64,000 nucleotides of DNA. Origin: Octopus sinensis (lineage: Eukaryota). The position numbers and the translations under genes are program-made. The notes beneath the pieces are model-generated. The model saw only the letters and a program-made list of their open reading frames with translations, did not search any database and was not told where the DNA came from. Shown in pieces: positions 2,059-50,177 of the stretch. The stretch lies in NCBI RefSeq assembly GCF_006345805.1, contig NC_043004.1, forward strand, positions 55,180,001-55,244,000, in the 5' to 3' direction. Position 1 is the first letter of the stretch, and each line of letters begins with the position of its first letter.

Positions 2059-3203
2059 GTGGGTTTCAGTTATGTAAGACTAAATTGATGTGTGATGTTG
2101 TTGTGTATCGTCAGTCCTGAGTCAGTAATTAGTTAAGTAAATAATTAGCTATGAGTTATAAATCCATAGTTCAAACTATATCCTATCTTTGCCTCATAGA
2201 GACCTATATTAAACAGGCAGTGCTTTATCATATTGTGTAGCATGGGACAGTTTAAATATGTAATTGTTCCCGGTCTTAGTACAACTAATGTTCTGAGAGA
2301 CATTGATCCAGTGAATCTTCACACAAAGGCAATCCAGGCATGACCATCCTATCTTTTTCTTATTTTCGTTTTTTGCAGACAACATATGAAAGCTACATGA
2401 TTGTGTTCCCCTATTTGTTTTTTGTTCAAAATAGCAGTGTCTGATTTGAGAAAGATTTGATTGCTATATCTAGCAGAGGCTTTCTTTGGTGACTCATTTT
2501 GTATGCTTGTAGGTATGGTTGTACCTTTTGTACGCCTGTAGGTGAGTGTGGTAAGCCTTTTGTGCCCTTGTAAGTGAGTTTTAGACAAAGAGGATTTGTT
2601 CATATGATTCTTGTTGTTTCTCTACACTTTTTACTGATGGCATGTGCATCCTTACATGGTGCTTGGCTCTAATGGGGGGTACTAATATTGTAGCTATTTT
2701 TTAGTGGTGCTTTATGTTTGTCTGGATCAGGTGGGAGAAATATCTTAGTGGGATAAGATGGTGTTGTAGTGTTCGAATTTTAACATTCCAGAACAGCACT
2801 GCCTAACACAATTACTATACACTAGAAGGGTACTTTTAAGAACATAATTAAACACTACAAATGCCACACATAATGAGAAAGTATTTATGAGGTTTATTGA
2901 CCTGCTTGAAACAGCTGCTAAATCTCCTTTTAATCACATCCATTATCTTAAATAAAGAAAAGGTACATTGCATAATGTACAGGTAGAAAGCCTTTGATCA
3001 CCAAAATTGTCCTAGAGCTGAACAAAAACATTATTTTCTACTAAAATAGCACACCATTGCAAGATTTTTATACTCTTAAACAGTATTCCCCTAGCACATT
3101 CCTAAACTATGACCATACACAAGATGTGTTCTCAAACAACAACAGATTGCCTGTCTATATTGTTGATGTTATAAAATGTAAGTTTTTCTGTTTCTCTCTT
3201 CAG

Positions 3204-3374
3204 TATCTCTTCCTGATGGATGTTACCATAGTGTATGTGGAAAGTGTCTGCCGTGTCAAAACTTTGTCCCTGTCAGCGCAACTGCTCTATCCTTTCATTG
3301 ACCACCTCCTGGTGCAGTGGCCACAGCTGAAGGAGCGATACAGTGGCGCCGACTTTCTTGGACAGTTAATCTAA
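3204..3374 (+). CDS. ALG14: ALG14 last coding exon
   Basis: tttctctcttcAG acceptor. Encodes YLFLMDVTIVYVESVCRVKTLSLSAQLLYPFIDHLLVQWPQLKERYSGADFLGQLI*, with the ALG14 C-terminal YVESxCRV...VQWP motifs. In frame with the 1999-2058 exon. Confidence 0.95.
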   Translation, partial: YLFLMDVTIVYVESVCRVKTLSLSAQLLYPFIDHLLVQWPQLKERYSGADFLGQLI

Positions 3375-3604
3375 TGTAGTGCAATGGGACAATATCATAA
3401 CACTGCTACCATCTCTACCAGTACCACTGTTTTACCACAGCTTCTGATAATGATCTCTCAACCAATGGACTCATATTGCAACACCCTGTGTACGCTTCTG
3501 CTATTGCTGCTGCTGTGCTCTTAACAACATTGCCATAAACTAGAGCAACACTACAAAATAGTCTGCCATACACTAGAGGTGCACTTTCAATAACAGTGTC
3601 TTGC

Positions 3605-3610
3605 AATAAA
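3605..3610 (+). promoter_or_regulatory. Candidate ALG14 polyadenylation signal
   Basis: AATAAA ~230 nt after the stop codon; not unique in AT-rich DNA. Confidence 0.3.
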
Positions 3611-4359
3611 AAACCACTTTTGCTTTCGATAAGTTTTGCCATACATAAATGGGGCCACTTCTAACCACATTGGTATCCACGAAATGTGCATTTCAAATAA
3701 CATTACAGGTGCAACATCAATTGGTTCCAAGTCCTTTCTGGGTTACTGATATTTTTCCGAACCAGGGGTGGGTTCCACTAAATTAGACAAATATTAAATT
3801 TATTAAAATAATTAAATGAAATACAGGTACTTTGTACATTAGTACAAATGATACAAGTTTGTTAGAAATGTACTATGCAAGGTATTTTGAAACGCTCACC
3901 CAGTAAGCTGGCCTGTGTGCATGGGAATTTGAAGTTCTTGCTTGCAAAATAGTGTGGATTATAAGAGATTCAGGACCATTAGTGTCCAGAAAGTTGGTGT
4001 TGCACCTGTATCATACACTAGAACAGTGAGCCCGAAAATATTTGGTAGATACTAGAATAATATTACTGTCAATATTGCTGTACACTACAAGAAGACATTC
4101 CAAATCAATGGCTGCACACTTTTTGTACACTTCCCTGAAACGTAGGTGTACAGCAAAATTGCACTGAAAACAACTGTGACACACAAACACCAGACCTGGG
4201 CTGCAAACTCTGCTTTGGACTAGAGCTGCACTCCAAACTCTGCGCTAATCCCTGCTAAATCCAACTCAACTCTGTTTAAGTGGAGCAATGTTAGATTTTA
4301 ATAGTTTCTCTCTAGTGTATAACATAGCAGAGTACGTTGGTGTCTGTCTATCATTTGAC

Positions 4360-4363
4360 AGAA

Positions 4364-4403
<40 letters not shown>

Positions 4404-4404
4404 A

Positions 4405-4498
<94 letters not shown>

Positions 4499-4620
4499 CA
4501 CATACACACACACATTTATACACATGTATATTTATACTTATATATATATGTATCTGTCTCTCATACAAATATATATTGCATTGTTAATATATATATATGC
4601 GTGTGTATGTGTGTGTATAG
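4360..4620. repeat. Compound (TA)n/(TG)n/(CA)n microsatellite
   Basis: Direct reading. Confidence 0.9.
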
Positions 4621-5022
4621 ATACACATTATGTGTGTATATACTTCACATACTTGTTAGTCTAGTATCTCGCCATTATTGTAGGGAGGTGCAACAGACTT
4701 TGAAATTATTTTCAGATTTATTGCTTACAAGCTTTATACACACGCATGTATACACACAGATTTTCATCATATAACCAACAAATGTAATCACTGCTCTTAG
4801 CATTATATATCTCAAAGTATACAGTAGCATAGATTTATTTTAGCCAATCTTATTGTATACTTTGATTAATATACCCACTATTGACAAATGTAATGAGTGT
4901 GTACTTTTCTGACTTATGGTTTCTTAGCCAACTATATATAATAGTTAATCTTGCCTTATAAATATACATATAGTACTAGTTTAACTTAGATATCCTGACC
5001 TCATACTGTATGTGTGTGTGTG

Positions 5023-5062
<40 letters not shown>

Positions 5063-6332
5063 TTCATTGTTAACTCTGTGGTAAGTTGATGCAATGCATA
5101 TTTTCTCCTTGCATTCAATAAAGAAATATTTTAACATAACAAACTTAGATGTTTCTAGACCACAACTAACCCCTTCTGTGATGATTTTACAAAGATAATA
5201 CTTTAGAAACACTGAGATAATACTCTAGAAACACTGAGATTTTGTGGTTGGCTGTTCTGTTGCTTGGTCATAAGTTTATAAACATATTGTCTCTGAAGTT
5301 TCAGCCACAGACCATTAGTGATCTTAAACCAACCACTCATGTTCAGATGGTTAAAATATTGAGAAGTGTAAATTATCACACTAACTCATTTCAGAAATTT
5401 TCTTACAGGTTCACTTTCCACAGGTATTAACTTATTTGTGTCTCATTGGAATCAAAAGTGTTGTTTTAATCTGCACGATTGAATTCTTAGGCTAGCTTAC
5501 TTAAATTTAAGAATTTTAATTTATGATTTTTCAATTTTCATGCTAGAATCTGTCAGAGGCTGATGAGTTAATTATTTTGATGGTGATTAACATAAAGTAG
5601 CCTCAGTTTACTAAATCTTTCCAAATTCTTGATTATTTTACCAAATTAGTTGAAACACATAAGGATTGGATGTATTTCTACGGAAATCTGATTACAACAG
5701 TGTCATCTGTTCTAAGTCTATTAATATAGTTCTTCAGTATATGAACACACACACACATTTAAGCTTGCTCTGAAATAGTTTTGTGGTTACAGCTTCCACG
5801 GTGGCTTGAGTAGGGTTTATTTTTATTTTCAATCCTTATTATGATTTGGAGTTGTTACAGAGAAAGATTTCTATAAATACTAGATATATCCTGTAATATT
5901 TGGGATAAATTCTTTGAATCAGTTGATCTCAGACTCTTGCAATGTTTTCATATTCTGGCATAAAAATCTCTCGTTTCTAGGTTTTATTTGCCATTATTCC
6001 AAACGCCTCATTTTCAGTGGCAATATTTTGCAAATAATATAATGACTACATTAACACTGAACTGATTTTTTTTCTTTTTGAATTTATTTGCAAGGAATCC
6101 AATCACTTAATTTTCAATGCTAATAAAAATTGGCCTTTTCTTACAAACTGATTCTGGCTTTAAATGTTTCTTAATTTCAATAAAATATGGGAATATAAAG
6201 AAGATGGAATAAAACTGAATTTGGTGTGAAACAAAGGATTTGATAGTAAAATTAAAAATGGAAAATGAATACAAAAATAGAAAGTTCTTTGCCTGAGGTA
6301 TTAGACATTTTGTTTTATTATAATATCACAAA

Positions 6333-6548
6333 AGACAGTGAGCTGGCAGAATTGTTTGCCCACCACACAAAATGCTTAGTGGTATTTTGCCTGTCCTTTA
6401 CATGTTCTGAGTTCAAATTCTTCCTTGGTCATCTTTGCCTTTCATCCTTTCAGGGTTGATAAAATAAGTACCAATTGAACACTTGGGTCGATGTAATCAA
6501 CTTACTTCCTCCCTCAAAACTGCTGGCCTTTTGTCAAAATTTGAAATC
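6333..6548 (+). mobile_element. tRNA-derived SINE family A, short-tail variant (old copy)
   Basis: gagctggcagaa...gagttcaaatt...gtaatcaactt core, ending gcctt..tcaaaatttgaaa. Confidence 0.7.
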
Positions 6549-6654
6549 ACTATAACAACACAACACGGCTTTATTTCTTAGAAAAATTTTTCCTTGTCTT
6601 AAATCTTGCAGTTAAATATTTACATTAAACTCCCCAAATTTTAATGAATTATTC

Positions 6655-7560
6655 CTATAAGGCTGAGGGTGTCTTGGCATCACTCACTAAGTCCTTTGTG
6701 AGTCGCTCTCTGGCTATCTATCTGAGGCTATATGGTGCAGCCTCACCTGGAATTTGCATCACCGGTCTGGAACCCTTATCTTGCCCAGGATATTAATCAT
6801 CTGGAAACCGTTCGGTGATGTGCAACCAAAAGAATACCTATTTCTTTATTACCCACAAGGGGCTAAATATAGAGGGGACAAACAAGGACAGACATAGGTA
6901 TTAAGTCGATTAGATTGACTCCAGTGCGTAACTGGTACTTAATTTATCGACCCTGAAAGGATGAAAGGCAAAGTTGACCTCAGCAGAATTTGAACTCACA
7001 ACGTAATGACGAAATACCGCTAAGCATTTCGCCCGGCGCGCTAACATTTCTGTCAGCTTGCCGCCTTTAGGCATTTACCATATTCTGAACGACTTACTTC
7101 CCTGGGCATGGATACATTGAAACTCCGACGTCTGGTAGCTGACTTGGGAGACACCCATAAGATTATTAACCATCTTACAAACAATAACTCTGTGCACTTT
7201 TTCAAACTCCACCTGTCTAACACCCGTGGACATGTTTACAAACTCAGAAAACAGCACAGCTCCCATGACTTTCGGAAAGATTTTTTCACGCTAAGAGTTG
7301 CTGAAGCATGGAACAGACTGCTGGCATCAGTTGTTAATTGTCGGAGCACTGCATCCTTCAAAACTTCCATGCTTCCTGAGATTCGCCAACACAACACCTA
7401 ATTTTCTCCCCTCCATATACATGCAAGCATGTATCTGACTCATACACTGTTCGCTTTCCAGACATTTGTACATTACTGCATATGCTTTATATGCACTTTT
7501 GACAAGTTGTGGTGCACCTGAGCACTGTATACAATAATTTCATTACTATTATTATATTAT
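6655..7560 (+). mobile_element. CR1-clade LINE 3' end, interrupted by a SINE
   Basis: Frameshifted PHLEFASPVWNPYLAQDINHLE..ATKRIP, then after the SINE RHLPYSERLTSLGMDTLKLRRL...TRGHVYKL..FFTLRVAEAWNRL. Short 3' UTR with (ATT)n tail. Confidence 0.85.
6838..7065 (-). mobile_element. SINE family A, long-tail variant, nested in CR1
   Basis: Full ggcggcaagctg...gccccttgtgggtaataaagaaatag sequence on the - strand. Confidence 0.85.
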
Positions 7561-7699
7561 ATTCACGGTTATTCCAATAACATGCTAAATACCTAACAAA
7601 AAATAGAATTGATATTTTCTCAACACGAAAATAGTCTTAAACATTTCATTCCTCAACAAAAGACAAATTGATATATAAAACTGCCTTCTGTAGTTAAAG

Positions 7700-9200
7700 G
7701 TAATGAAATAAGTGGGCTGGTTACGCCCCTGGCTTAGGCCACGAGGTTATACTTTCTTTTGGTTTCCCAGGTCTTCTCAAGCACAGCATATTTCCAAAAG
7801 TCTCGGTCACTTGTCATTTCCTTGGTGAGGTCTAAAGTTCGAAGGTCATGCTTCACCATTTCATCCCAGGTCTTCCTGGGTGTACCTCTTCCACAGGTTC
7901 CCTCAACCGCTAGGGTGTGGCACTTTTTCACACAGCTATCCTCATCCATTCTCGCCACATGATCATACCAGCGCAGTCGTCTCTCTTGCACACCACATCT
8001 GATGCTTCTTAGGTCCAACTTTTCTCTCAAGGTACTTACACTCTGTCAAGTATGCACACTGACATTACACAGCCATTGGATCATACTGGCTTCATTCCTT
8101 GTGAGATTACGCATGTCCTCAGCAGTCATAGCCCATGTTTCACTGCCATGTAGCATGGCTGTTCGTACACATGCGTCATACAGTCTACCTTTTACTCTGA
8201 GCGAGAAGCCCTTTGTCACCGGCAGAGGTAAGAGCTCTTTGAACTTTGCCCAAGCTATTCTTATTCTAGCAGCTACACTTCAGCACACCCGCTACTGACT
8301 TGAAGCTATCAAGCTACTGACAGAAGCTATCAACTACTAGTTTTTCTTCCTGGAATGTGGCGGAAGTTGTTCTCTGCGCATTTTCAGTGTTTATTGCTCC
8401 CGAGCATCTGCCACATACAAAAACTATCTTCCCAGTTTACCTTCCTTTAATATTACTGCTCCGCTTATATGTCCATAGCTTACACTGGGTACATCTTATA
8501 GAGTTTCTACCTACGCCTCTACTACAGATCGAGCAGGGACATCTACCTGAAAGGATTTGTGGTTTGCCTGCCTTCCTACTTATTAGGACTTTGGTTTTAG
8601 CTAGATTGACTTTAAGGCCTTTTGAATCTAATCCTTTCTTCCAAAACCTGAAACTTTTCCTCTAGTTCTGACAGTGACTCAGCAATTAGAGCAAGGTCAT
8701 CAGCATAGAGAAGCTCCCAGGGGTATCTTGTCTTGAATTCCTCCGTTATTGCCTTGAGGACTATGATAAATAAGAGGGGGCTGAGAACTGAACCTTGGTG
8801 GACCCCTACCTCTACCCTGAATTCTTCAGTGTACTCGTTGCCAACCCTCACCTTACTGACAGCATCCCTGTACATGGCTTGCACAGCTCTCTATTTCTTT
8901 ACTACTCACAAGGGGCTAAACACAGAGAGGACAAACAAAGACAGACAAATGGATTAATTCGATTGTATCGACCCCAGTGTGCAACTGGTACTTAATTTTT
9001 CGACCCCGAAAGGATGAAAGGCAAAGTCGACCTCGGCGGAATTTGAACTCAGAACGTAACGGCAGACGAAATACTGCTACGCATTTCGCCCGGCGTGCTA
9101 CCGTTTCTGCCAGCTCGCCGCCGGCTCTCACTAACCATTCATCTATCCCTAGTTTCCTCATTGACCACCAGATAAGGGATTGGGGACCCTGTCAAAGGCT
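7700..9200 (-). mobile_element. RTE LINE RT C-terminal half, degenerate
   Basis: ORF pieces GVHQGSVLSPLLF, LLYADDL, RRLRWYDHVARM, GRGTPRKTW. Confidence 0.9.
8892..9123 (-). mobile_element. SINE family A nested in RTE, with 6-bp TSD
   Basis: Splits the RTE reading LGIDEWLVRA|VQAMY. GCTCTC at 8886-8891 and 9124-9129. Confidence 0.9.
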
Positions 9201-9269
9201 TTTTCCATGTCAACGAAAGCCAGGTACTATATATATACAATACATACAATATTTTACATTATATTTTGA

Positions 9270-9371
9270 CATTTACAGGCACTTTTTGGAACCATTTCTA
9301 ATATTCGCGGTTTTTCACTATTCGTGGCTGCTCTAGGAATGTAACCCCTTTGAATACAGGGGCACTACTGT
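9270..9371. mobile_element. Tc1/mariner Tigger-like terminal fragment
   Basis: Ends ...gtaacccct..gaata..ggggcactactg|TA, resembling a Tigger TIR. Confidence 0.45.
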
Positions 9372-10129
9372 ATTTCAGCAAGATATGTGAAACTAAAAAA
9401 GAAAACCAATATATTAAAGTAATTTTTAGTATTTTAAGGGTCAATCTACTGTCTCCTTTTTTGTGAATATAGATCTAAATTGATCTGAACTCCACCTATT
9501 TTTCCATGATGTATTACATATATAATGTCCTTAGTTTAAATATAACTGACCAATTGTAGAGATGGCAGGACTTTGGTCAGTTCCATTACGGACAACAGTT
9601 GTTTGGTCCCTAGAATATTTCGATAAGTACACCATTATAAAAACTCTACGGGTTTGGTTTTGGATAAGATATTAATTAGCCCTTTTTACTGAATCATAAG
9701 TACTATTCGTTTTCTAGACATATTGGTGAGTCCTGCTTTACTTTAGCACTAGTTTTATCCTACTACTATGTATACATCCTCGTACCCCTACATAAGGGAT
9801 AACCAATAAATTATTTCTCTAGCTCATTTGCTAGTTCACTCTTTTGCCTATCGACTTCAAGCTTTACACTGCAAAATGGTATGATTCTAATTTATTGAGC
9901 CTTCTGGCCTCATCTCGAGGCCCTGTTCTTTCCTCTTCCCTCTTCATTTAATATATTTTATTTTATGTATTTGTATTCACTCTGATGTATTCACCCAGCA
10001 TTCAGAATGTGTCTGGGATATCTCTGATGAAAGCTTTCAAGGAAACTTGCATGACGTTTGTAAAGGATCCATGTCTCACATGAGTAAAAGAGCGCTGTCG
10101 GTACACATGCACGGTACACAACAATTTTT

Positions 10130-12600
10130 GTTTGCTTTGTGATGCAATGCTGGGATCAGACACGAGACTGGAAGGAATCAGCTGCTCTCTGCAGCCTGAA
10201 AGATATTTCATCATCCAGGGAGCAAGAACGGCTGAGTGTGGTGCCTATGTAGACAAACTTGTCTGCCACTTTCAGAATTGTTCCTCCAACCAAGATAGCT
10301 GGTTCCACGTATGGATTTCCTGGTGCAGGCTGGAACATTAGAACAGTCTTGTCCAGGCTAATGCTGAGACCAAATGCCTTGCAAGAAGCAGAAATACGAT
10401 TCATAAGTATTTGCATGTCATCTGCATAAAGGAGGTCACGTATAAGAGACTGGAAAACTTTTGAATTGGCAGCAAATTGGTGCAGACTAAAGGGGCGACC
10501 AGAAGATCGATACCTGACATATATTCCCAGAGAGCTAACCTTAGCAAAAGCATGAGTAAAAGCAGCAGCCAAATAAAAAAATAGAGTTGGGACAAGGATG
10601 TCACTCTGCTTGAGACCATTCTTTACAGGAATGGGTGCCGCCATGTGACCACCAGCATTGACCCAAGCCTTCATCCCATCATGAAATGATTTAATTATAG
10701 ATACAAAGTGATTCGGACATTCAAGTTTGCCAAGTATTTTCCACATCAAGGCCCTATTCACAGTGTCAAAGGCCTTCGTTAAATCAATACCCGGATAAGA
10801 TCCATATTCTGCTCATAGCACTTCTCCTGCATCTGTCTTTCTGTGAAAATCATATCCATTGTCCCTCTACCAGATCGGAAACCACATTGAGATTCAGATA
10901 GAACATCATTTACGAGACATTCATTCAGGCGGGTAAGAGTATTTGCCAGAACCCTACCTTGCTGACGGTAGGGCAATACCTCTGTAGTTACCACACATTG
11001 TTCTGGCTCCTTTTCCATTGTAGAGAGGAAGAATAATTGCATTCTTCCAGTCCTTAGGCATTGCACCTTCTCTCCAGACTACATTAATAAGTTCATGAAG
11101 GGAATGTATGATGTAATCACCACCAATTCGCAAGACCTCAGCTCAAATTCCATCCCTTCCAGGTGCCCTACCAAGGTTCACTTTAATTATTGATGTCATT
11201 ACCCCATCTATTGAGGGCGTGGAATTTAAGGAGCCAATGATAGGTCTTTGTTGCATAGTATCAATCACTGTTTCATCTACAACTGACTCATGGTTTAGGA
11301 GTTCAAAGAAGTGTTCAATCCAGTGAGCTGTGGTTTCTGTTGATTTAGTAAATAGAGTAGAAGACACATTAGAAAGCAAATGAGCTGATGCATAGCTCTT
11401 AGGCCCATAAACTTGCTCCATAAGATGGTAAAGCTTCTTGCTGTCATTTGCATCAGCAGCCTGAACATCACGAGCAAGAGCCTCCCACCAAGTGTTCTGC
11501 ATCTTCCTGGGAGATCGCTGCTGTATTGATTTTACACTGCTATACAGGGCAAGTGCTAGATTTCGTTGCACAACAGAAAGTCCTCTGTGCAGCAATGCAA
11601 CGTGGGCATGGCGCTTTACAGCTAATAGTCGCTGAACTTCAGCATCATTTTCATCAAACCAGTCTCTGTGTCCGGCAGTATCATATCCCATTGTTTTAGC
11701 AACATATTGATGAACCTGATCTCGAAAATCTTCCCATTCTGTATTATTTTCAATGCTGGACAAGTGAGTCTGAAGCTTTTTCCTCAACATAGCATCATAT
11801 ATCTTGTGGACATTCAGACGCCGAGAAATGCCGACTGGCCCTCTTCTCTCTTTCACTCTAAGCATCATCCGGAACTTTGTTCAGACCAGACTGTGGTCTG
11901 TCCGGCATTCCGATCAATGAAAGGACTTGACATTACAAATGTCATAGACATCATGCTTGCCGATGATGACATAATCCAGCCAAACTTTAGACCTTGGATG
12001 CATCCACGTTGTTGTGTGATCACCTTTGTGCATAAAATGAGTGCTTGCGATGTAAAGTCTATGTTCATCGCAAAGCTCTAGACGTTCATTTATAGGAACA
12101 GGAAAGCTCCTCCAACTTCTTTCTATACGAGTCTCTGAAAGTGCAGCTATATCAATATTGTAGCGGTTCAGCTCGTGAGCAACTAGTGCAGTGCGTCTTT
12201 CAGGCCTACAATCACTCTTGTTATTCAACAGCACGCGCACATTCCAACATGAAATGTTCAAGTTCCATCCAGATTTTGTAAATACAAGTCTCTTTGTCTT
12301 TCCAGCGCAGGGTGGACATCCGTCAGTTGCGGTAAACTGACCAGATATAAAAAGGCAGGCAATTCTTGATTCACCTTTTCTAGAACCTCTCCACCCTCCG
12401 GGTAAGCAGTCATCTCTCCAAATGGAGCTGCTCAGACACCCATGCAGCAACCGAATACTACCGCTGTCTTGGGTGACAATTAGACGACTTTATATCAAGC
12501 ATGGACCGCCTACGTGAAAGCTGCTGACTATATGCTTCCAACCCGTCAGGTCTGCATGCTTCAACACCTTCCCATCACCGTAAGACTTCCGAATAAAAAT
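10130..12600 (-). mobile_element. RTE (BovB-like) LINE, degenerate EN + RT
   Basis: APE motif WNVRVL...ERRTALVAHELNRYNIDIAALSETR. RT motifs ESQCGFRSGRGTMDMIF and RDLLYADD. Many frameshifts and deletions. Confidence 0.9.
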
Positions 12601-12689
12601 AAAATAAATATATACTATAAATAAATAAATATATAAATATATACTAAAAACAAAGACACATATATATACTGAAAATAAAATATATATAC

Positions 12690-12975
12690 CATGTGAGTGG
12701 ATTTGGTAGACGGAAACTGAAAGAAGCCTGTCGTATATATGTATATATGTATGTGTGTGTGTGTTTGTGTGTCTGTGTTTGTCCCCCTGGCATTGCTTGA
12801 CAACCGATGCTGGTGTGTTTACGTTCCCGTCACTTAGCGGTTCGGCAAAAGAGACCGATAGAATAAATACTGAGCTTACAAAGAATAAGTCCCGGGGTCG
12901 ATTTGCTCGACTAAAGGCGGTGCTCCAGCATGGCCGCAGTCAAATGACTGAAACAAGTAAAAGAGTAAAGAGAAA
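12690..12975 (+). mobile_element. SINE family B, 3' part
   Basis: gtgagtggatttggtagacggaaactgaaagaagcc...ggcggtgctccagcatggccgcagtcaaatgactgaaacaagtaaaaga; same family as 40780-41150. Confidence 0.8.
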
Positions 12976-13547
12976 GAGTATATACAGTATATATATAAAG
13001 AAAAAAGCAGCACATATCGAGCAGAGGTCAGCAGCTTTGCACGACGCCTTATAGATCCTCTCCACTTTATTGACATTATCCAGCGACAAGCCAGAGCAAG
13101 ATGTCTGGTGCCAATATGAGTTGCCGGCTCAGGAATGTGGGAGCGCCATGATCTCTAGCACTAACCAAACATTCCTAAAATGTCCAATGCCATTCCCTGC
13201 ATATCTGGTTTTATATCAGACCTTCTCATAGTGACATGCTTCAACAGAAGCTGAGGGGTGCGTCACACCCAGTGGTCTTTTAACACGCCCGACATCATCC
13301 CGGAATTTCTGCGTATCCGTGCTATTGCTAGATAGCCGTTGAGCCTGCTCTAGGTTCATCCGACCTTTTAGTAGGACTTGTTTTAAACCCTGCTGGGTTT
13401 CTAGCAACCCTTCTCACCAGGGTAGCCTGGTGGGGGTGCCGGTTTAGCCACCGACAACCCGACCAAGCAACATTCTCTTCCTCTATGTTATCATCTTATT
13501 GATATATATATACCATTCTCATTTTACATATTTTTCCCTTCCAATTT

Positions 13548-13603
13548 GTCTCTGATGACGAAATATCCCGTGCTCGAGGATATCCCAGAAACAGCTGTAA
13601 GAT
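13548..13603 (+). ncRNA. Degenerate minimal type-I hammerhead ribozyme motif (Penelope pLTR-like)
   Basis: gtct-CTGATGA-stem II (atatcc/ggatat)-GAAA-C(AGCT)G-TA-agat. Stem II closing pair imperfect. Confidence 0.45.
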
Positions 13604-13814
13604 TTTGAATTTGTTCCTGTAATAATGTCGTATATGACTTGAGATGTTTGCCTTGCCTTAATGTTTGACGTCCTGTTTAACAATTATATATCCGCTACAT
13701 CGGAAATCTGAAATAGCTTCATAACTACCGTCTTCGAGCCCCAGTAATCCGTTACAGCACTTACCTAGCGTACCTAATCGTTTGGATAACCTGTGAACTA
13801 AACCCCCACACTTT

Positions 13815-13865
13815 GTATATATGTAATAACTATGTGTATATATATATATATGTGTATATATATAT

Positions 13866-13913
<48 letters not shown>

Positions 13914-13940
13914 TATATTTATACATATATATACATACAT

Positions 13941-13973
<33 letters not shown>

Positions 13974-14013
13974 CATATATATATACATTTATACATTTAT
14001 ATACATTTAAATC

Positions 14014-14046
<33 letters not shown>

Positions 14047-14230
14047 GTACATAAATACATATACATCTATAAATATATGCATGTATACATATACATCTAT
14101 ACATATACATCTATATATATGCATATATATACATATATATGTGTAGATGTATATACGCATATACACATGCATATATAATGTATGTGTGTGTGTGTGCGTG
14201 AGTGAGTGAGTGAGTGTATGCATGTATATA
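13815..14230. repeat. Compound (TA)/(CA)/(CATA) microsatellite
   Basis: Direct reading. Confidence 0.9.
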
Positions 14231-15103
14231 TGTAAGTGAAATAAGTTTCACTTTTAATGGTTCTATAAAAATAGTAACGTGATCCTATTCTTAATAATAT
14301 ATTTTACTGACTATATTTTACATGCAGCGGCAATACACCTAAGTTTGTAATGACAACAAGATTTCTTTTTAAGATATATACATTATTTATTTTACATATT
14401 TTACAATCATGTTTGATGTTGGAAGTTTGTAAGTGTTCGCATGTTTTTGTGTCTGTGTGTTCGTTAGGCGTAAAAAGGTACTGACCAGTGAATTGTCGAT
14501 GGGATTTGATTCACAGTTAATGTTGTTGGTATCGGCTTGGCAACAGGTAATAACAGATGGCTTAAGGTAGTTCTTAGAAGAAACTAGAACCCAAGAAACA
14601 GATAATTGATTTACCGTTTATGAGGTACACTGTAAGAGTCCCATATCAAGATATTGCATGTCGCAGTTGAGATTTATTGAATCACTCGTTGTGTTTATCT
14701 TTCTCTTGATATGAATATACTTCCAGACATGTTACTGTAGCCGTTTTCTTCGTGGCGAGAATTTCACCTAACCGCTATAGTTGAATCTGTAGTTGTCTCG
14801 TGTACAATTTAAATCTTCGATGTTTGTCGATTGGTTCTTGCTGCTTCTTCATTATATGTTCTGCTTGGTTATGTTTCTCTAGTTATAGATATCTTGTAAC
14901 CGTTTTCTTCATGGTGATTTTTCACACTAACAGTATGAGAGGTATCTGTAACATCTTGTATTAATGGTGGTCGCCTGCCTCGAAACTGGAACTTGGTCGA
15001 GTATTCTCTGTGTGGTCAGAGACTTAGCTCTTAAAAGAACTAAAAGCCTACGACGAGCTCTGTGTGGTCAGAGGTTCGCCCTGAGAAGGACTGGAAACCT
15101 AAG

Positions 15104-15720
15104 TATTTCTTTATTACCCACAAAGGGGCCACGAAGAGGGGGACATTACAAGACGGGACATGGGGTACATAAAGTAAAAATAAAATATGAAGTAAAGATG
15201 AATTATATGTAATGAGATGGAACGGCTTACGAACCCCCAACTCGCAGTTCCGTTTAAAATACAATTGTACATTTCATATATTCCAGTTCAAAATACAATT
15301 TTACAGTTACATATATTCCAGTTCAAAGTACAATAATTTTACAATTTACATTTTAACATTACATACATTCCTGTTCAAAATACAACTTTACATCTTACAA
15401 TTTTACAATTAACAATTCTAATTCTTTTATATTGGACGTTCGTCCGTCATATATTCTAATAGGTCCATTTGGTCTATTACATTTGGTAAATTGTCATACC
15501 GTACATAATGCGTTATATGAATAGCATTAAATATCTTTTTTAATTTTGTGTATGTTTCTTTTTCTATAATTGCGCCTTTTACATCGTCGCCATACAGTTT
15601 TGGGTTCACCTTCACCCTGACCAACCCTTTCCTACCTGCAAGTCTCTTTTCCACTTCTGTATTCTTGATATACATCACAACTGCTTTCAGGTTTTTTCCT
15701 GTAGGCCTTCTTCCATATTT
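15104..15720 (-). mobile_element. ORF1-only retroelement, unit C (5'-truncated, 617 bp)
   Basis: C-terminal ~96 codons (ending 15427) plus 3' UTR; homologous to the 3' end of unit B. Confidence 0.8.
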
Positions 15721-17472
15721 TATTTCTTTATTACCCACAAAGGGGCCACGAAGAGGGGGACATTACAAGACGGGACATGGGGTACATAAAGTAAAAATAA
15801 AATATGAAGTAAAGATGAATTATATGTAATGAGATGGAACGGCTTACGAACCCCCAACTCGCAGTTCCGTTTAAAATACAATTGTACATTTCATATATTC
15901 CAGTTCAAAGTACAATAATTTTACAATTTACATTTTAACATTACATACATTCCTGTTCAAAATACAACTTTACATCTTACAATTTTACAATTCTAATTCT
16001 TTTATATTGGACGTTCGTCCGTCATATAATCTAATAGGTCCGTTTGGTCTATTACATCTGGTAATTTGTCATACCGTACCTAATGCGTTACATGAATAGC
16101 ATTAAATATCTTTTTTAATTTTGTGTATGCTTCTTTGTCTATAATGACGCCCTTCACATCGTCACCATACAGTTTTGGGTTCACCTTCACCCTGACCAAC
16201 CCCTTCCCACCTACAAGTATCTTTTCCACTTCTGCATTCTTGATATACATCACAACTGCCTTCAGGTTTTTTCCTGTAGGCCCTCCTCCATATTTACACG
16301 ATTCCAACTGTTCGTTCACTCCTGTCTCCCATTCTTGTTCAAACTCTGTCCCTGGCCGCTCTCTCGCCCTCTCCTCTACTTCCTGTTCTTTGCATGTTCT
16401 CTCTTCTCTCTCTTCCGCCATCTTGCTTCCGATTTTTTTCTTTTTTAGATCTTTCGGTGGTGATTCCACCCTTGATCTCTTCCTATCTTCTGTTTTTTCC
16501 TCTTCTACACTTGCTCGTTCTTCCTCATTTAACTGCTCCTCCATTCGTGTTTCCTCCGCTTTCGCTTCCTCCACACACGCATCTTTACACTCCTCTATCA
16601 CAACCTCCGGTGCTTTTGTTTTTTCCCGCGGGCACACATCCTTCATGTGGCCCCTCGATTTACAATTATAGCAGATTGGGGGTCTTCCCTCTACCACAAC
16701 TCGGAGCCGTGTCTCGTCAGGGTAGACCAACTCCTCCGGGATGTTGTACAGGTCTCGCACAGTTATGTGTGCCAGAACCTGCACCGTATATCCCCACCAT
16801 TTCACCTCCGCTGACTTCTCCACCTTCAGTACTTCCACATCATCCTTGCAGTTAAACAGCACTGCTGCCAACAACCTTTCCATATTAAATTCGGGTGAGA
16901 TTCTATTGATTCTCATCCTCACTGCTCTCCTTCCGCAGTAACTTGGTAGCAAAGTCCACTTATCCGATTTCAAAAGTCTTGTTGCGTTCTTTTTTGCCTC
17001 ATTTTCTGTTTCAAAATATACCACTACCGTGGCATACTTCTTTCCTCTTTTGAAAAATGTGGGTTCACCCTCAATTTCCTTCAGACACCTTTCTACTTCT
17101 TCCATTTCCGCTACTTCAATTTTTTTCGACTCCACACACCACGTCCTGTACGTTATAGTACGCTTCTCTGCACTGCTTTCCTCCTCCTCGGACGGTGTGA
17201 CTCTTACGCAGTCACCCTCCCTCTTTAAACTGTCGAAATACTTCTGTAGGGTCTTCTGTTCGACCACCACCTCCTCCATTTCCAGCTCGCCGGCAACCAG
17301 GCCTTTGCCTGCCGCTCGCGCGTAAGTCTGTTCTTGCATTTTCAGGAAAAAAATTATTCCACGTCCTCCAACGAATTCGAACTCACCACCTCTTCACTTG
17401 AAATAAACACACCAGAATAATCACACCTGAATAACTCCAAATAACTCACTCAAAGACTGGAAGCCTGAGACG
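15721..17472 (-). mobile_element. ORF1-only retroelement, unit B (full length, ~1.75 kb)
   Basis: ~135-nt 5' leader, gag-like ORF, ~280-nt 3' UTR ending gcccctttgtgggtaataaagaaata. No RT, no poly(A). Confidence 0.85.
16080..17339 (-). CDS. L1/Tx1-type ORF1 (gag-like) protein, 419 aa (445 aa to 16002 if the TAG at 16080-82 is read as in unit C)
   Basis: RRM-like TVVVYFETENEAK region, zinc knuckle CYNCKSRGHMKDVC (CX2CX4HX4C), E/K-rich linker, conserved C-terminal domain. Unit C has TAT where B has TAG. Confidence 0.8.
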   Translation of the reverse strand: MQEQTYARAAGKGLVAGELEMEEVVVEQKTLQKYFDSLKREGDCVRVTPSEEEESSAEKRTITYRTWCVESKKIEVAEMEEVERCLKEIEGEPTFFKRGKKYATVVVYFETENEAKKNATRLLKSDKWTLLPSYCGRRAVRMRINRISPEFNMERLLAAVLFNCKDDVEVLKVEKSAEVKWWGYTVQVLAHITVRDLYNIPEELVYPDETRLRVVVEGRPPICYNCKSRGHMKDVCPREKTKAPEVVIEECKDACVEEAKAEETRMEEQLNEEERASVEEEKTEDRKRSRVESPPKDLKKKKIGSKMAEEREERTCKEQEVEERARERPGTEFEQEWETGVNEQLESCKYGGGPTGKNLKAVVMYIKNAEVEKILVGGKGLVRVKVNPKLYGDDVKGVIIDKEAYTKLKKIFNAIHVTH

Positions 17473-19179
17473 TATTTCTTTATTACCCACAAGGGGCTAC
17501 GAAGAGGGGGACATTACAAGACGGGACATGGGGAACATAAAATAAAAATAAAGTATGAAGTAAAAAATGAATTAGATGTAATGAGATGGAACGGCTTACG
17601 AACCCCCAACTCGCAGTTCCGTTTAAAATACAATTATACATACAATTTTACAGTTACAATAATTTTACAATTCTACATGTCAACATTACATATATCAAAA
17701 TACAACTTTAAATTTTACAATTCTTTTACATTAGACGCTCGTCCGTCATATAATCCAACAGGTCTGTATGCTCTATAACATCTGGTAATTTATCATACCG
17801 CACATAATGCGTTATGTGCATGGCATTAAACATCTTTTTCAATTTTATATATGTCTCTTTGTCTATAATGACGCCTTTCACGTCGTCAACATACAGCTTT
17901 GGGTTCACCTTCACCCTGACCAACCCTTTCTTACCTACAGTCTCTTCTCCACTTCTGTATTCTTGATATACATTACAACTGCCTTCAAGTTTTTTCCTGT
18001 CGGCCTTCTTCCATATCTGCACGATTCCAATTGCTCGTTCACTCTTTTCTCCCATTCTTTTTCAAACTCTGTCCTTGGCCGCTCTCTCACCTTCTCTTTT
18101 ACTTCCTGTTCTTTGTCTTCTCTCTCTTCTGCTATCTTGCTTTTAATTTTCTTCTTTTTTTGATCTTTCGGTGGTGATTCCACCCTTGATCTTTTCCTGT
18201 CTTCCGTCTTTTCCTCTTCTGCACTCTCTCGTTCTTCCTCACTTAACCGCTCCTCCATTCGTACTTCCTCCGCTTTCGCCTCCTCCACACACGCGTCCTC
18301 CATCACAACCTCCGGTGCTTTAGTTTTTTCTCGCGGGCACACATCCTTCATGTGGCCCCTTGATTTACAATTGTAGCAAATTGGGGGTCTTCCCTCTACC
18401 ACAACTCGGAGCCGCGTCTCGTCAGGGTAGACCAGCTCCTCTGGGATGTTGTACAGGTCTCGCACGGTAATGTGTGCGAGAACCTGCACCGTATATCCCC
18501 ACCATTTCACCTCCGCTGACTTCTCCACCTTCAGTACTTCCACATCATCCTTGCAGTTAAACAGCACTGCTGCCAGCAACCTTTCCATATTAAATTCGGG
18601 TGAGATTCTATTGATTCTCATCCTCACTGCTCTCCTTCCGCAGTAACTTGGTAGCAAAGTCCACTTATCCGATTTCAAAAGTCTTGTTGCGTTCTTTTTT
18701 GCCTCATTTTCTGTTTCAAAATATACCACTACCGTGGCATACTTCTTTCCTCTTTTGAAAAATGTGGGTTCACCCTCAATTTCCTTCAGACATTCTTCTA
18801 CTTCTTTCATTTCCGCTACTTCAATTTTTTTCGACTCCACACACCACGTCCTGTACGTTATAGTACGCTTCTCTGCACTGCTTTCCTCCTCCTCGGACGG
18901 TGTGACTCTTACGCAGTCACCCTCCCTCTTTAAACTGTCGAAATACTTCTGTAGGTCTTCTGTTCGACCACCACCTCCTCCATTTCCAGCTCGCCGGCAA
19001 CCAGGCCTTTGCCTGCCGCTCGCGCGTAAGTCTGTTCTTGCATTTTCAGGAAAAAAATTATTCCACGTCCTCCAACGAATTCGAACTCACCACCTCTTCA
19101 CTTGAAATAAACACACCAGAACAATCACACCTGAATAACTCCAAATAACTCACTCAAAGACTAAAAGCCTGAGACGTAT
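17473..19179 (-). mobile_element. ORF1-only retroelement, unit A (full length, ~1.71 kb, frameshifted)
   Basis: Same 5' leader (atacgtctcaggc...). ORF broken by 1-bp losses near 18955 and 17940 (track ORFs 17935-18840 and 17726-18055). More diverged 3' UTR. Confidence 0.85.
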
Positions 19180-19559
19180 ATTTTTCTGAGAAACCTTGTT
19201 TTATAAGCTTCATCAGGCTCCCAGTGAACTTCAGAAATGGAAAGCTGTGATTGGCTGCTTGGACTATGGCGCGAAAATAAGTCGAGACATTTTGCGCCAA
19301 GTTATAACCAGCGGTGCGAGCGTAGTAGAGACCAACGTGTCAGCCAATCGAATTAGTGTTTACAACAATGTTAAACTAGCCAAAGCTGTTTGTAATCTCG
19401 ACCGAGGTCATTCTTAATACTCTTCTCAAACAGTGAAGATAGCAATGAGAGACGATATTACTACAGTTCCATTATTAATAGTAAAAGTATATAACAAGAG
19501 TGATTGTAGGCCTGAAAGACGCACTGCACTAGTTGCTCACGAGCTGAACCGCTACAATG

Positions 19560-20087
19560 ATTTTTCTGAAGAAACTGGACGAAGCCACAGACTTTCCCAG
19601 AAGAGTAAAGCCTTAAACTATTTCTTTTTACTTTTTCGAATGAGCCCATTTGAAATCATTACGGCGGAAACGAACCGTTACGCTAAACGTAAACAAAGCG
19701 AAAGAAAGGATAGTTTGTTATTTCCCACAACCTTAAATGAAATTAAGGCCTATTTTGCCATAAATATTATTATGGGTATCAGAAAGTTACCCAGAATAAC
19801 AAATTCTATCGTAAAATTTTGTTGTATACCCAACTGAATATTAGCTAATAACCCATTTTCTATAGCGATGTTTGAACAAAATTTTAATAATTTTATATAT
19901 TGTTGAATTTACCTGTATCTACCTGCAATTAGAGTCACTTTGTGACAAAAATTATAGTATAGAATTGGTTGAGAACATTTCATTAAATTATCTTCCAAAA
20001 TTCATGTTAATATATTGTAAATTTATGATTACGTTAGAAAATAATTGAAACACATTTTGGTCAGAAATATAGTAACGAAAGGGTTAA
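19560..20087 (+). mobile_element. piggyBac transposase fragment and right terminus
   Basis: LNYFFLLF..FEIITAETNRYA...TTLNEIKAYFAINIIMGIRKLP resembles the DDE_Tnp_1_7 N-terminal part. Ends ...cgaaAGGG|TTAA at 20080-20087. Confidence 0.75.
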
Positions 20088-42990: not shown

Positions 42991-43000
42991 CATATATATA

Positions 43001-43601
43001 TTTTTTATTGCCCACAAGGAGTTAAAACATAGAGGGTACAAACAAGGAGAGACAAAGGGATTAAATCGATTACATGGACCCCAGTGCGTAGCTGGTGCTT
43101 TATTTATTGACCCCGAAAGGATAAAAGGCAAAGTCGACCTCGGCGGAATTTGAACTCAGAACGTAACCGCAGACGAAATACCTATTTCTTTATTACCCAT
43201 AAGGGGCTAAACACAGAGAGGACAAACAAGGACAGACAAACGGATTAATTCGATTACATCGACCCCAGTGCGTAACTGGTACTTAATTTATCGACCCCGA
43301 AAGGATGAAAGGTAAAGTCGACCTCGGCGGAATTTGAACTTAAAACGTAACGGCAGACGAAATACCTATTTCTTTATTACCCACAAGGGGCTAAACACAG
43401 AGGGGACAAACAAGGACAGATAAACGGATTAAGTCGATTATATAGACCTCAGAGCGTGCGTTACTGGTACTTAATTTATCGACCCCGAAAGGATGAAAGG
43501 CAAAGTCGACCTCGGCGGAATTTGAACTCAGAACGTAACGACAGACAAAATACCGCTAGGCATTTCGCCCGGCGCGATAACGTTTCTGCCATCTCGCCGC
43601 C
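43001..43601 (-). mobile_element. SINE family A head-to-tail trimer
   Basis: One full copy (43366-43601) and two copies truncated at the same internal site (junctions at 43181 and 43365). Confidence 0.9.
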
Positions 43602-43610
43602 TTATTTTTA

Positions 43611-43950: not shown

Positions 43951-44246
43951 CATTCATTCATTCATTCATTCATTCATTCATTCATTCATTCATTCATACA
44001 TACATACATAAATACATACATACATACATACATACATACACAATTACGAATTAGAAATAGCGCTAGTATTGTAAACATTACCAACTGCACATAATGTATG
44101 TATTTTGCCTGTTTGCCGGAGATGACTCTTTCTTAGCACTGGATGTTAAAACAACTGAAAGTCAAATACAGGCGAGACAACTCGCCTACAGTCCCATTCA
44201 GGAGTGATGGATATTAATATTTCGCCATTTTGATATTTCGCCAAAA

Positions 44247-44477
44247 GGCGGCGAGCTGGCAGAAACTTTAGCACGCCGGGCGAAATGCGTAGCCGTATTT
44301 TGTCTGCCGTTACGTTCAGAGTTCAAATCACGCCGAGGTCGACTTTGCTTTTCATCCTTCCGGGGTCGATAAATTAAGTACCAGTTAAGCACTGGGGTCA
44401 ATGTAATCTACTTAATCCGTTTGTCTGTCCTTGTTTGTCTCCTCTATGTTTAGGCCCTTGTGGGTAATAAAGAAACA
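44247..44477 (+). mobile_element. SINE family A, full length with 12-bp TSD
   Basis: GATATTTCGCCA at 44232-44243 and 44478-44489. Confidence 0.9.
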
Positions 44478-44554: not shown

Positions 44555-46230
44555 TCATGATCATCATCATCATCACCGTCTTTTAACGTCCACTTTCCAT
44601 GCTGGCATGGGTTGGGCGATTTGACTGAGAACTGGTAAGCTGGGAGGCTGCACCAGGCCCCAATCTGATTTGGCATGGTTTCTAAAGCTGGATAGCCTTC
44701 CTAACGCCACCCACTCTGACAGTGTAGTGGGTGCTTTTTACGTGCCACCGGTACTGACATCAGCCACGCTCGAATGATGCTTTTTACGTACCACCGGCAC
44801 GGGTACCAGTCAGGTGGCACTGGCATCGGCCACGCTTGAATAATGTTTTTTACGTGACACCGGCACGAGTACCAGTCAGGTGGCACAGGCATCGGGTACG
44901 CTCGAATGGTGCTTTTTACGTGACACCGGCATTAGCATGAGACACGGCATCGATTTCACTCGGTCCAATGTCTTCACAAGCACGGCACATCGCCCGACGA
45001 TTGGAGGTTGCTTTTAAACGGACCAGTTATGCGACACTGGTATCGGTCACGACCATAATCGCATTTGGCTTGCTGGGTCTTTTCAAGCAGGGCATATCTC
45101 CAAAGGTCTCGGTCGCTTGTCATTGACTCTGAGAGGTCCGAGGCCTAACGTCCGAAGGTCGTGCTTCACCACCTCATCCTATGTCTTTCTGGGCCTACGT
45201 CTTCCACAGGTTCCTTCCACCATAAGGGTGTGGTACTTCTTCACACAGCTGTCGTCATCCATACGCATCACATAACCATACAAGCGCAGTCGTCTCTCTT
45301 GCACACCACATCTGATGCTTCTTATGTCCAACTTTTCTCTTAGAACACTTACACTCTGTTGTACAAGGACACAGACATTACACATCCAGTGGATCATACT
45401 AGCTTAATTTCTTTCGAGTTTACGCATGTCCTCAGAAGTCATAGCCCATGTTTCACTTCCGTGTAGCATGGCTGTTCACACACAGGTATCATACAATCTA
45501 CCTTTCACTCTGAACGAGAGGGCTTTTGTTACAGCAGAGGTAGGAGCTCTCTGAACTTTGCCCAGCCATTTCTTATTCTAGAAACTCCGCTTCCAGAGAA
45601 CCCATCTCCGCTACCGACTTGGTCACCTAGGTAACGGAGGTTATCAACTGGCATGTGATGGAATCTGGTTTCTGTATATTTTCGGTGTTTATTGCACCTG
45701 TGCATCTCCCACACATAAAAACTATCTTCCCAGTTAATCTTCCTCTGATATTGCTGCACTTTTTATGTATCCATAGCTTACACTGGGTACATTTTATGGA
45801 GTTTCTACCTACGACTTTTCTACAGATCGAGCAAGGCCGTCTACCTGAAGGAATTTGTGATTTGTCCTCTTTACTGCTTACTAAGGTTTTTGCTAGGCCC
45901 TTCGATTTTAGACCTAGCTTCCACAACTGAAATTTCTCTAGGTCTGGTAGTAACTTAGCTATAAGAACAAGGCCATAAGCATAAAAGAGCTCCCAGGGGC
46001 AGCCTGACTTGAATTCTTCTCTTATTGTCTGAAGGACTATGATGAACAAGAGAGGGGGGCTGAGAACTGATCCTTGGTGAACCCCTACTTCTATCGCGAA
46101 TTCTTCGCTATACTCGTTGCCAAACCTCACCTTACTAACAGCATCCCTATACATGGCTTGTACAGCTATCACTAACTACTCATCTATCCTTAGTTAGCGC
46201 ACTGACCACCAGATAAAGGATCGGTGTGGG
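44555..46230 (-). mobile_element. RTE LINE 3' half, degenerate
   Basis: GVHQGSVLSP, CSICRKVVGRNSIKCTQC, RRLRLYGYVMRM. 3' UTR with tandem hairpin units and (GAT)n tail. Confidence 0.9.
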
Positions 46231-49840: not shown

Positions 49841-50177
49841 CATAGATACACACATGCATATATATTTTTACGTGCGGGTGCATACACATACATACAGACA
49901 CATACGCATATGCAAACGTACAGATGCATATAATGTTAGATGTTCATTAAATTTTTCCTTGAATTTCCCTATAAATTATAAACCACACTAATGATTACCT
50001 GCTGAGTGAAAATATGCATATGCCTAATAAAGTTGTCCTTATTTGTATTTAACTCTGTTTTTTTTTCAAATATGGCATATAAAGTTAGTTTAAAATATTG
50101 AGTAAAACAAAAATATTAACTCGTTACCCAGTAAAGAAGAAAATAATAAGAATGACGATGATAATATAATAATAATA

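Follow-up and report, generated by a model that had tools for sequence, protein, structure and literature searches.

A head-to-tail array of ORF1-only units in the Octopus sinensis genome, probably a non-autonomous derivative of an L1/Tx1-like LINE

RESULTS

Layout of the array

The subject of this study is a tandem array of retroelement units in Octopus sinensis, each built around a single open reading frame (ORF) that resembles the first ORF (ORF1) of a long interspersed nuclear element (LINE) and is not followed by a second one (ORF2). The array lies in a 64,000-nt stretch of AT-rich animal DNA laden with microsatellites and transposons (NCBI RefSeq assembly GCF_006345805.1, NC_043004.1, positions 55,180,001 to 55,244,000, forward strand), which we call the window and whose numbering is used throughout. 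An earlier note, made from the sequence alone, had placed three abutting units on the minus strand at 15104-19179. A direct-repeat search and a MAFFT alignment reproduced these three head-to-tail units, A, B, and C, on that strand, with one correction: the array spans 15104-19176, and unit A ends at 19176, since the trinucleotide ATA at 19177-19179 is extra relative to unit B (Table 1).

Both junctions are exact and free of any spacer: ...AATAAAGAAATA meets CGTCTCAGG... between A and B, and ...GAAATA meets AAATATGG... between B and C. The 3' ends of the units finish in ...GGGTAATAAAGAAATA, and the first base of the next unit adjoins. The earlier note had given each full unit a leader of ~135 nt and a 3' untranslated region (3'UTR) of ~280 nt, with no ORF2, poly(A), long terminal repeat (LTR), or clear target-site duplication (TSD), and this description was borne out. 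We measured a leader of 133 nt and 3'UTRs of 250 to 320 nt across units A, B, and C (281 nt in B), which are non-coding and run straight to the tail. The units hold no ORF2, and no match to a reverse transcriptase (RT) or an endonuclease was found within 15104-19179. Poly(A) is absent from units A, B, and C, and neither the direct-repeat search nor inspection of the junctions revealed LTRs around them.

Directly 3' of unit C lie two to three diverged tandem repeats of ~55 nt (14960-15103, minus strand) that resemble the first ~28 nt of the unit leader, a pattern derived post hoc. One possibility is that they represent the monomeric 5'UTR of a different element; no ORF1-like coding sequence was found beyond them.

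Table 1. Features of the array and of related loci. Positions are those of the window unless a locus is named. SINE, short interspersed nuclear element; pLDDT, predicted local distance difference test.
Feature	Position	Strand	Remarks
Unit A, full length	17473-19176 (1704 nt)	-	Leader 19044-19176; ORF1 17726-19043; 3'UTR 17473-17725
Unit B, full length	15721-17472 (1752 nt)	-	
Unit B 5' leader, 133 nt	17340-17472	-	Begins CGTCTCAGGCTTCCAGTCTTTGAG, immediately after the unit A tail
Unit B ORF1, family frame	16002-17339	-	445 codons plus stop; open part 419 aa
Two predicted RRM folds, residues about 61-134 and 137-216	16692-17159	-	AlphaFold2 pLDDT >90, Foldseek
CCHC zinc knuckle CYNCKSRGHMKDVC, residues 223-236	16632-16673	-	CX2CX4HX4C motif
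E/K-rich, mostly helical linker, residues about 240-352	16284-16622	-	Carries both 9-nt A/B indels
C-terminal domain, residues about 355-445	16005-16277	-	Family-conserved; premature stop cuts it in B
Unit B 3'UTR, 281 nt	15721-16001	-	TGTAAA-type repeats, then hairpin with G-rich loop, then tail
Unit C, 5'-truncated at unit position ~1178	15104-15720	-	Last 97 ORF1 codons (15427-15720) plus 323-nt 3'UTR
3' tail box of C (...TGTCCCGTCTTGTAATGTCCCCCTCTTCGTGGCCCCTTTGTGGGTAATAAAGAAATA)	15104-15163	-	Also at 15721-15780 (B) and 17473-17531 (A)
tRNA-derived SINE copy	6839-7068	-	Final 24 nt identical to unit A tail
Further SINE copies with the same tail	8892-9125 (-), 43367-43604 (-), 44244-44477 (+), 47729-47962 (+)		
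Head-to-tail SINE array	42999-43604	-	One full copy and two copies cut at the same base (GGTATTTCGTCTG); 184-nt period
Distant ORF1-like coding stretch	63404-63802, inside ORF 63014-63886	+	Second member of the same protein family; 30% identity over 112 aa, first RRM region; near window end
L001 (O. vulgaris)			Solo ORF1-only copy with tail; 10-bp TSD GCTGGGTTCG
L013 (O. vulgaris)			ORF1-only copy without ORF2
L004 (O. sinensis)			ORF1-only copy, 5'-truncated, interrupted by a SINE insertion
L002 (O. bimaculoides CM046605.1)			At least 3 head-to-tail units; unit 1 tail abuts unit 2 leader; unit 3 of another subfamily
L003 (O. sinensis)			ORF1, then APE endonuclease, RT fragments, zf-RVT, and 235-nt 3'UTR
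L012 (O. vulgaris OX597840.1, about 31.86-31.88 Mb)	locus 2440-17026		Three full-length ORF1 + ORF2 units
L014 (Argonauta hians BAAFZT010000045.1)	locus 6998-12029		Nearly intact bicistronic LINE; 528-aa ORF1 adjoins ORF2; one frameshift
L011 (Logan contig)			ORF1, then apparent start of APE ORF2

The ORF1 protein

From its N-terminus, the protein of the family frame comprises a pair of RRM folds, followed by a CX2CX4HX4C knuckle, a linker that is helical and rich in E and K, and a C-terminal domain of ferredoxin-like fold; the RRMs, the helices of the linker, and the C-terminal fold are predicted. The earlier note had read an RRM-like region, the knuckle, an E/K linker, and a C-terminal domain from the sequence. 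An AlphaFold2 model made with 49 homologues had a pLDDT of 80 overall and >90 for residues 21-245, and the top Foldseek matches of the latter region were the tandem-RRM proteins SFPQ/NONO, IMP3 RRM12, and hnRNP A1 UP1 (E about 4e-5). The C-terminal domain has the predicted topology beta-alpha-beta-beta-alpha-beta; it had no significant structural match (best E 0.06) and is described here as nothing more specific than ferredoxin-like. Searches of the ORF against Pfam, NCBIfam, and PDB sequences returned a zf-CCHC match (E 0.0016) below the gathering score of Pfam and nothing else, whereas the same domain scores above that threshold in the homologues P0002 and P0053. One or two RRMs followed by a CCHC knuckle are the hallmark of the Jockey-like class of ORF1 proteins (ORF1p) (PMC3905857), and this arrangement, a predicted tandem RRM with the knuckle after it, is the one found in the window.

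Damage, divergence, and selection

The earlier note had assigned one ORF to each full unit. A coding frame is indeed present, but none of the three units has it intact: that of unit A is broken by two 1-nt deletions, at about 18954/5 and 17939/40, that of unit B meets a premature TAG at 16080-16082, 26 codons short of the family stop, and that of unit C is truncated, its C-terminal domain being intact despite the loss of the 5' part. The in-frame indel seen earlier between the units (VIEECKDAC vs VMEDAC) is real, and a second indel of 9 nt separates A and B.

Identity between neighboring units is mosaic. Over the first 700 alignment columns, 8 of 696 sites differ between A and B, compared with 101 of 1006 in the rest (p 9e-16); identity is about 99% in the leader and the 190 codons that follow it, and 84-92% downstream. 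Between B and C, 21 of the 294 coding sites differ (7%), in contrast to none of 281 in the 3'UTR (p 7e-7). This pattern indicates that recombination has acted, either between neighbors or between the source RNAs.

The ratio of non-synonymous to synonymous substitution rates (dN/dS), which the earlier note had proposed to compute among copies, was 0.19 for A versus B, with 47 synonymous and 38 non-synonymous changes (binomial p 4e-12 for the synonymous excess); in the divergent part of the pair it was 0.17, at a synonymous rate (dS) of 0.36. Such an excess indicates that the lineages leading to A and B evolved under purifying selection, and it implies that most of their divergence arose while ORF1 was under selection, instead of having built up in place after a duplication. 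A and B thus appear to stem from distinct coding sources and not from a local duplication, in line with the earlier view that they are no recent tandem duplicates.

Autonomous relatives with an ORF2

At four of the homologous loci that were fetched (L003, L012, L014, and L011), the family ORF1 is followed by an ORF2. In the first three, it stands directly upstream of an ORF2 with endonuclease, RT, and zinc-binding parts, which confirmed the assignment of the window ORF to the ORF1s of LINEs. The domains of these ORF2s are Exo_endo_phos, RVT_1, and zf-RVT, i.e., an APE endonuclease, an L1-like RT, and a C-terminal zinc-binding domain. Unit 2 of the O. vulgaris locus L012 has a 993-aa ORF2 reading frame with RVT_1 and zf-RVT, and the best PDB match of the L012 ORF2 was the human L1 ORF2 protein (ORF2p), at E 1.4e-61 versus 1e-25 for R2. 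Because homologous ORF1s precede these L1-like APE-RT ORF2s, the ORF in the window is best described as the ORF1 of an L1/Tx1-like LINE family of octopods, an assignment that is made by domains and the PDB match and that does not separate L1 from Tx1. It agrees with a report that L1-Tx1 LINEs have been recently active in O. vulgaris (PMC13282606). A LINE of the same family is present in Argonauta hians (L014); the ORF1-ORF2 family therefore predates the Octopus/Argonauta split or moved between the two. The RT-bearing LINEs inside the window were considered as partners and ruled out, being about 24% identical to the L012 ORF2.

A 3' tail shared with LINEs and a SINE

The tail box at the end of each unit holds an AATAAA 6 nt before its end. 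Within the window there are nine occurrences of the final 24 nt of unit A, where none is expected by chance, and those outside the units are the 3' ends of copies of a tRNA-derived SINE. An alignment of about 60 nt (TGTC..TTGT..TGTCCCC.CT....GCCCCTTGTGGGTAATAAAGAAATA) brings together the ORF1-only units, the SINEs, and the LINEs of L012 and L003. Pairs of a LINE and a SINE that have a common specific 3' end and lack poly(A), such as UnaL2 and UnaSINE1 of the eel, bear the signature of tail recognition by the RT. By this analogy, the ORF1-only unit would carry the tail signal by which the RT recognizes the LINE and the SINE.

Four of the seven SINE tails examined (including those at 6839, 43183, 43367, and 47939 of the window and at 10446-10674 of L004) are followed by GGTAT(T), which suggests a target preference or multimeric source copies.

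ORF1-only copies at other loci

Copies without an ORF2 were found at four further loci, L001, L013, L004, and L002, in three Octopus species, so the ORF2-less family proposed in the earlier note extends to independent copies beyond the window. As marks of retrotransposition, the solo relative L001 is flanked by a 10-bp TSD, whereas the window array has no significant one. The units of the O. bimaculoides array L002 are 37% and 43% identical to the window ORF and about 46% to each other. Runs of N at positions 11441-11775, 12687-13280, and 14590-15160 of this locus fall exactly inside the array, indicating that ORF1-only arrays break short-read assemblies, and one of its units is annotated as a protein-coding gene (XP_052823997.1).

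A neighbor-joining tree of the RRM-RRM-CCHC region split six ORF1-only copies from four ORF2-linked ORF1s in 184 of 200 bootstraps (92%). The earlier note had held that its reading would fall if most genomic copies ran on into an ORF2. On this point, the ORF1-only and the ORF2-linked forms are separated by the tree, although the comparison covers eight distinct fetched loci only. Though small in sample and simple in method, the tree speaks for ORF1-only copies that evolve as a lineage of their own and against their recurrent production from each LINE subfamily.

Homologues and their distribution

A HMMER search against 1.84 billion representatives gave 379 homologues (E<=1e-3), the closest being 44-52% identical and none exceeding 52%. 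Those with an organism name came only from O. bimaculoides, O. sinensis, O. vulgaris, and Argonauta hians, and they were annotated as uncharacterized or CCHC-domain proteins. Large in number, these homologues are fragmentary as well, and chimeric gene models join some of them to WD40, RGS, or astacin domains. Exact look-up of the window ORF and of the homologue P0002 matched no contig. A word-indexed protein search with the full ORF yielded no matches among 8000 candidates, and residues 60-245 likewise gave none; with an alignment of N-terminal domains as the query, it returned P0009 and two fragments and nothing else. Six Logan contigs (L005-L010) of similar lengths from several runs were considered as transcript evidence and set aside, as they are distant relatives whose ends are bounded by repeats. 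Consistent with the earlier note, to which no description of such an element in cephalopods was known, full-text literature searches, which Repbase and Dfam lay outside, found no description of an ORF1-only LINE derivative in this group.

Arrays as a trait of the tail family

Exact head-to-tail arrays occur in all members of the family defined by the tail: the ORF1-only units (window and L002), the full LINEs (L012), and the SINE (42999-43604). In L012, the LINE units repeat with a period of 5279 bp and 98-100% identity, and the tail of each abuts the 5'UTR of the next; this array may extend past the fetched locus. By record coordinates, the related arrays are interstitial, with L002 at 72.5 of 127 Mb and L012 at 31.9 of 40.2 Mb. 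No telomeric repeats were found in the window.

Other features of the window

Just upstream of the array, at 19433-19837 (plus strand), lies a fragment of a piggyBac-type transposase (DDE_Tnp_1_7, E 9e-8), joined to 68 nt that match, with 100% identity, a portion of the N-terminus of a LINE endonuclease at 12157-12224. An ORF with a PIF1-like helicase domain (58019-58759, plus strand; Pfam E 5e-36) is probably a Helitron remnant. An RT-bearing LINE (51445-53550, plus strand) sits between (AAT)n blocks within 50142-56254, one of which is 2.2 kb long (54007-56254), and the L003 LINE is inside (ATT)n (L003 9727-9778 and 15347-15380); some octopus LINEs may target these microsatellites. A microsatellite-targeting model of the arrays, raised by the position of L003, was dropped, since neither the ORF1-only units nor L001 nor the SINEs lie within microsatellites. 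Finally, a unit of 66-68 nt (…GGCATCGGCCACG…TTTTTACGTGCCACCG…) is repeated in tandem about 2.8 times at both 1208-1394 and 44753-44931 and probably belongs to another repeat family.

DISCUSSION

A probable half-LINE

We consider it probable that the units are a non-autonomous, protein-coding "half-LINE" derived from an L1/Tx1-like LINE, in which the leader, ORF1, and 3'UTR were kept and the whole of ORF2 was lost. Their ORF1p is homologous to that of autonomous LINEs, no ORF2 intervenes before the 3' end, and the ~60-nt tail aligns with that of the L012 and L003 LINEs. To the earlier reading, these results add the type of the autonomous partner, the tail that the units have in common with that LINE and with the SINE, and the recognition that all members of the tail family occur in arrays.

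For the half-LINE, we infer transcription, coating in cis, and mobilization in trans. An RNA of ~1.75 kb would be made from the leader and translated into ORF1p, which would coat its own RNA. The ORF2p of an autonomous LINE with the same tail would then recognize the ~60-nt 3' tail in trans and copy the RNA into the genome by target-primed reverse transcription that initiates at the defined 3' end and not on poly(A). The same tail is also borne by the abundant tRNA-derived SINE.

Several observations weigh against this explanation. Since all three local ORFs are damaged, the window locus itself is not a source, and the best TSD candidate flanking the array, AGGTTTC, is not significant (p about 0.06). 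The sampled autonomous LINEs have ORF1s 32-37% identical to the window ORF, and their tails end in GGGTAAATAAAATAAAA, as opposed to GGGTAATAAAGAAATA in the units, the last ~12 nt being different; the exact partner subfamily is therefore not among them. Nor is there a clear likeness between the 5' ends of the ORF1-only units and those of the LINEs. The 3'UTR folds no more stably than shuffled sequences do (z = +0.5) and its hairpin has no compensatory pairs in an alignment of five sequences, so we make no structural claim for it. As for the tree, it is built by neighbor joining on BLOSUM distances from the ten copies of known context only, and one of its ORF1-only tips (L002 unit 3) runs into an assembly gap.

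Alternative explanations

The alternative that survives best is that the ORF1-only copies are dead-on-arrival retrocopies, i.e., one-off copies of spliced or internally deleted LINE RNAs that form no self-propagating lineage, the selection signal having come from full-length masters. In other genomes, copies of LINEs that were spliced or carry deletions are common; here, each of the local ORFs is broken, and the deletion takes out almost exactly ORF2, as splicing could. However, the same architecture recurs in ORF1-only copies that belong to several subfamilies from three species and whose ORF1 identity falls as low as about 30%, and these copies group apart from all four ORF2-linked ORF1s, as an independent lineage predicts. 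On balance, we regard this alternative as unlikely.

It is considerably more doubtful that the array grew by unequal crossing-over from one deletion derivative, the copies having then diverged in place and undergone gene conversion, with the short form never having retrotransposed. The exact abutment without a TSD between units would fit such an origin, as would the near-identical blocks (the 5' part of A and B and the 3'UTR of B and C), which indicate that neighbors do recombine, and the L012 LINE units, which are as alike as after a recent duplication. Divergence in place should be neutral for non-functional copies, however, and that between A and B is not, given its strong synonymous excess. 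The ORF2-less architecture is also found at unlinked loci in other species, one of them with a TSD, and L002 combines units of different subfamilies.

We give still less credence to a domesticated cluster of host genes that arose from a LINE ORF1, as did mammalian L1TD1, and is selected at the locus. The dN/dS is well under 1, and some homologues are annotated as genes in Octopus assemblies, but none of the three local copies is free of damage (frameshifts, a premature stop, or a truncation), the units retain the transposon 3' tail and abut each other, and the homologues are numerous, fragmentary, and in chimeric models, some being interrupted by a SINE or flanked by a TSD.

Least of all can the units be a piece of a Penelope-like element (PLE) or the gag of an LTR retrotransposon, with the tandem as a pseudo-LTR/LTR artifact, a chance we judge negligible: PLEs are abundant in octopus and form partial tandems (PMC8557442, PMC13282606), sharing the head-to-tail layout with 5'-truncated members, and CCHC knuckles also occur in retroviral-type gag, but the truncated copy precedes the full one in PLEs and follows it here, at the 3' and not the 5' end of the array (PMC8557442), no LTRs are present, the predicted fold is a tandem RRM and not a capsid, and the linked ORF2 of the relatives is an APE endonuclease with an L1-like RT, neither the GIY-YIG/RT of PLEs nor a protease-RT-integrase. 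Rfam gave no match to the hammerhead or any other family at the gathering score, or at E<=1 in 14500-19700, which rules out the PLE/hammerhead reading; the LTR/gag reading, which the earlier note had named among the outcomes that would refute its own, likewise fails.

Origin of the arrays and of the lineage

Returning to the half-LINE, its arrays could form when the RT, on reaching the 5' end of an RNA, jumps to the 3' end of another during a single integration event, and later gene conversion between neighbors would give rise to the mosaic identity. The RT of R2 makes multi-template products and head-to-tail repeats by template jumping, including in cells (PMC11371274). We tentatively favor template jumping followed by gene conversion as the most likely cause; the other candidates are unequal crossing-over and recurrent insertion at the end of a copy already in place. 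Template jumping or end-targeted insertion fits better than simple duplication because the junctions are exact, subfamilies are mixed, and the truncated unit lies at the 3' end. Possible, and a little more doubtful than template jumping itself, is a broader scenario of a single old, self-propagating ORF1-only lineage diversified across Octopus species (to about 30% ORF1 identity), which encodes a protein, parasitizes L1/Tx1-like LINEs, and uses the RT-recognition tail of the dominant SINE; in it, LINE, half-LINE, and SINE make up three tiers that are all arrayed head to tail and interstitially by serial template jumping.

Comparison with known systems

HAL1 of mammals is a non-autonomous LINE derivative that encodes only ORF1p and relies on the ORF2p of an autonomous relative (PMC5753468). 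The octopus unit resembles it in encoding only ORF1p and in having a partner type from the L1 superclade, as judged from the match of its ORF2 to human L1 ORF2p. HAL1, on the other hand, has an L1-type ORF1p (coiled coil, RRM, and C-terminal domain) and poly(A), whereas the octopus unit has two predicted RRMs with a CCHC knuckle and a specific tail, and it stands in exact head-to-tail arrays. HAL1 is also said to have several independent origins, in contrast to the octopus form, which on a small sample appears to be one old, diversified lineage. The unit thus works like HAL1 without being a member of it.

HeT-A of Drosophila encodes only a CCHC Gag/ORF1, relies on the RT of its relatives, and forms head-to-tail arrays mixed with them (PMC5537684). 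About 40% of the telomeric transposable element families of Drosophila are ORF1-only, and some ORF1-only lineages spawn new ones (PMC13534243). Like HeT-A, the octopus unit is RT-less and ORF1-only, has a CCHC knuckle, and is arrayed head to tail. However, HeT-A arrays form the chromosome ends and their units have poly(A) 3' ends, whereas the related octopus arrays are tens of Mb inside chromosomes; furthermore, HeT-A belongs to the Jockey clade, whereas the octopus partner ORF2 is L1-like and the units carry no poly(A). Lacking a terminal array and a Jockey origin, the unit is not a member of the HeT-A type.

Two further systems bear on the octopus unit. Its ORF is homologous to the ORF1 of L1/Tx1 LINEs with a Jockey-like ORF1p, i.e., those at L003, L012, and L014, from which the units differ by having no ORF2. 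The conserved 3' end of ~60 nt common to an autonomous LINE and a tRNA-derived SINE recalls UnaL2 and UnaSINE1, to which the octopus would add a third, protein-coding tier between LINE and SINE, with tail recognition presumed from the shared end.

Implications

In Octopus assemblies, the ~1.75-kb units and their arrays are annotated as uncharacterized genes or chimeric models, and gaps in the assembly fall on them (L002). Masking them is advisable when transposable element activity is studied in the genome and brain of the octopus. Few settings are known for ORF1-only LINE derivatives, among them HAL1 and the telomeric elements of Drosophila. In Drosophila, the loss of ORF2 has been linked to telomere specialization (PMC13534243). 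A mollusc lineage that has the same gene content, keeps its ORF1 under purifying selection, and stands in non-telomeric arrays would generalize this life style and separate it from telomere biology. It also bears on what ORF1p does for an RNA that borrows its RT, be it cis-preference, assembly of the ribonucleoprotein, or competition with SINEs for ORF2p. If the single-lineage scenario is true, the octopus elements would parallel the HeT-A system away from telomeres and offer a natural way to ask why ORF1p is kept by an element that has no RT.

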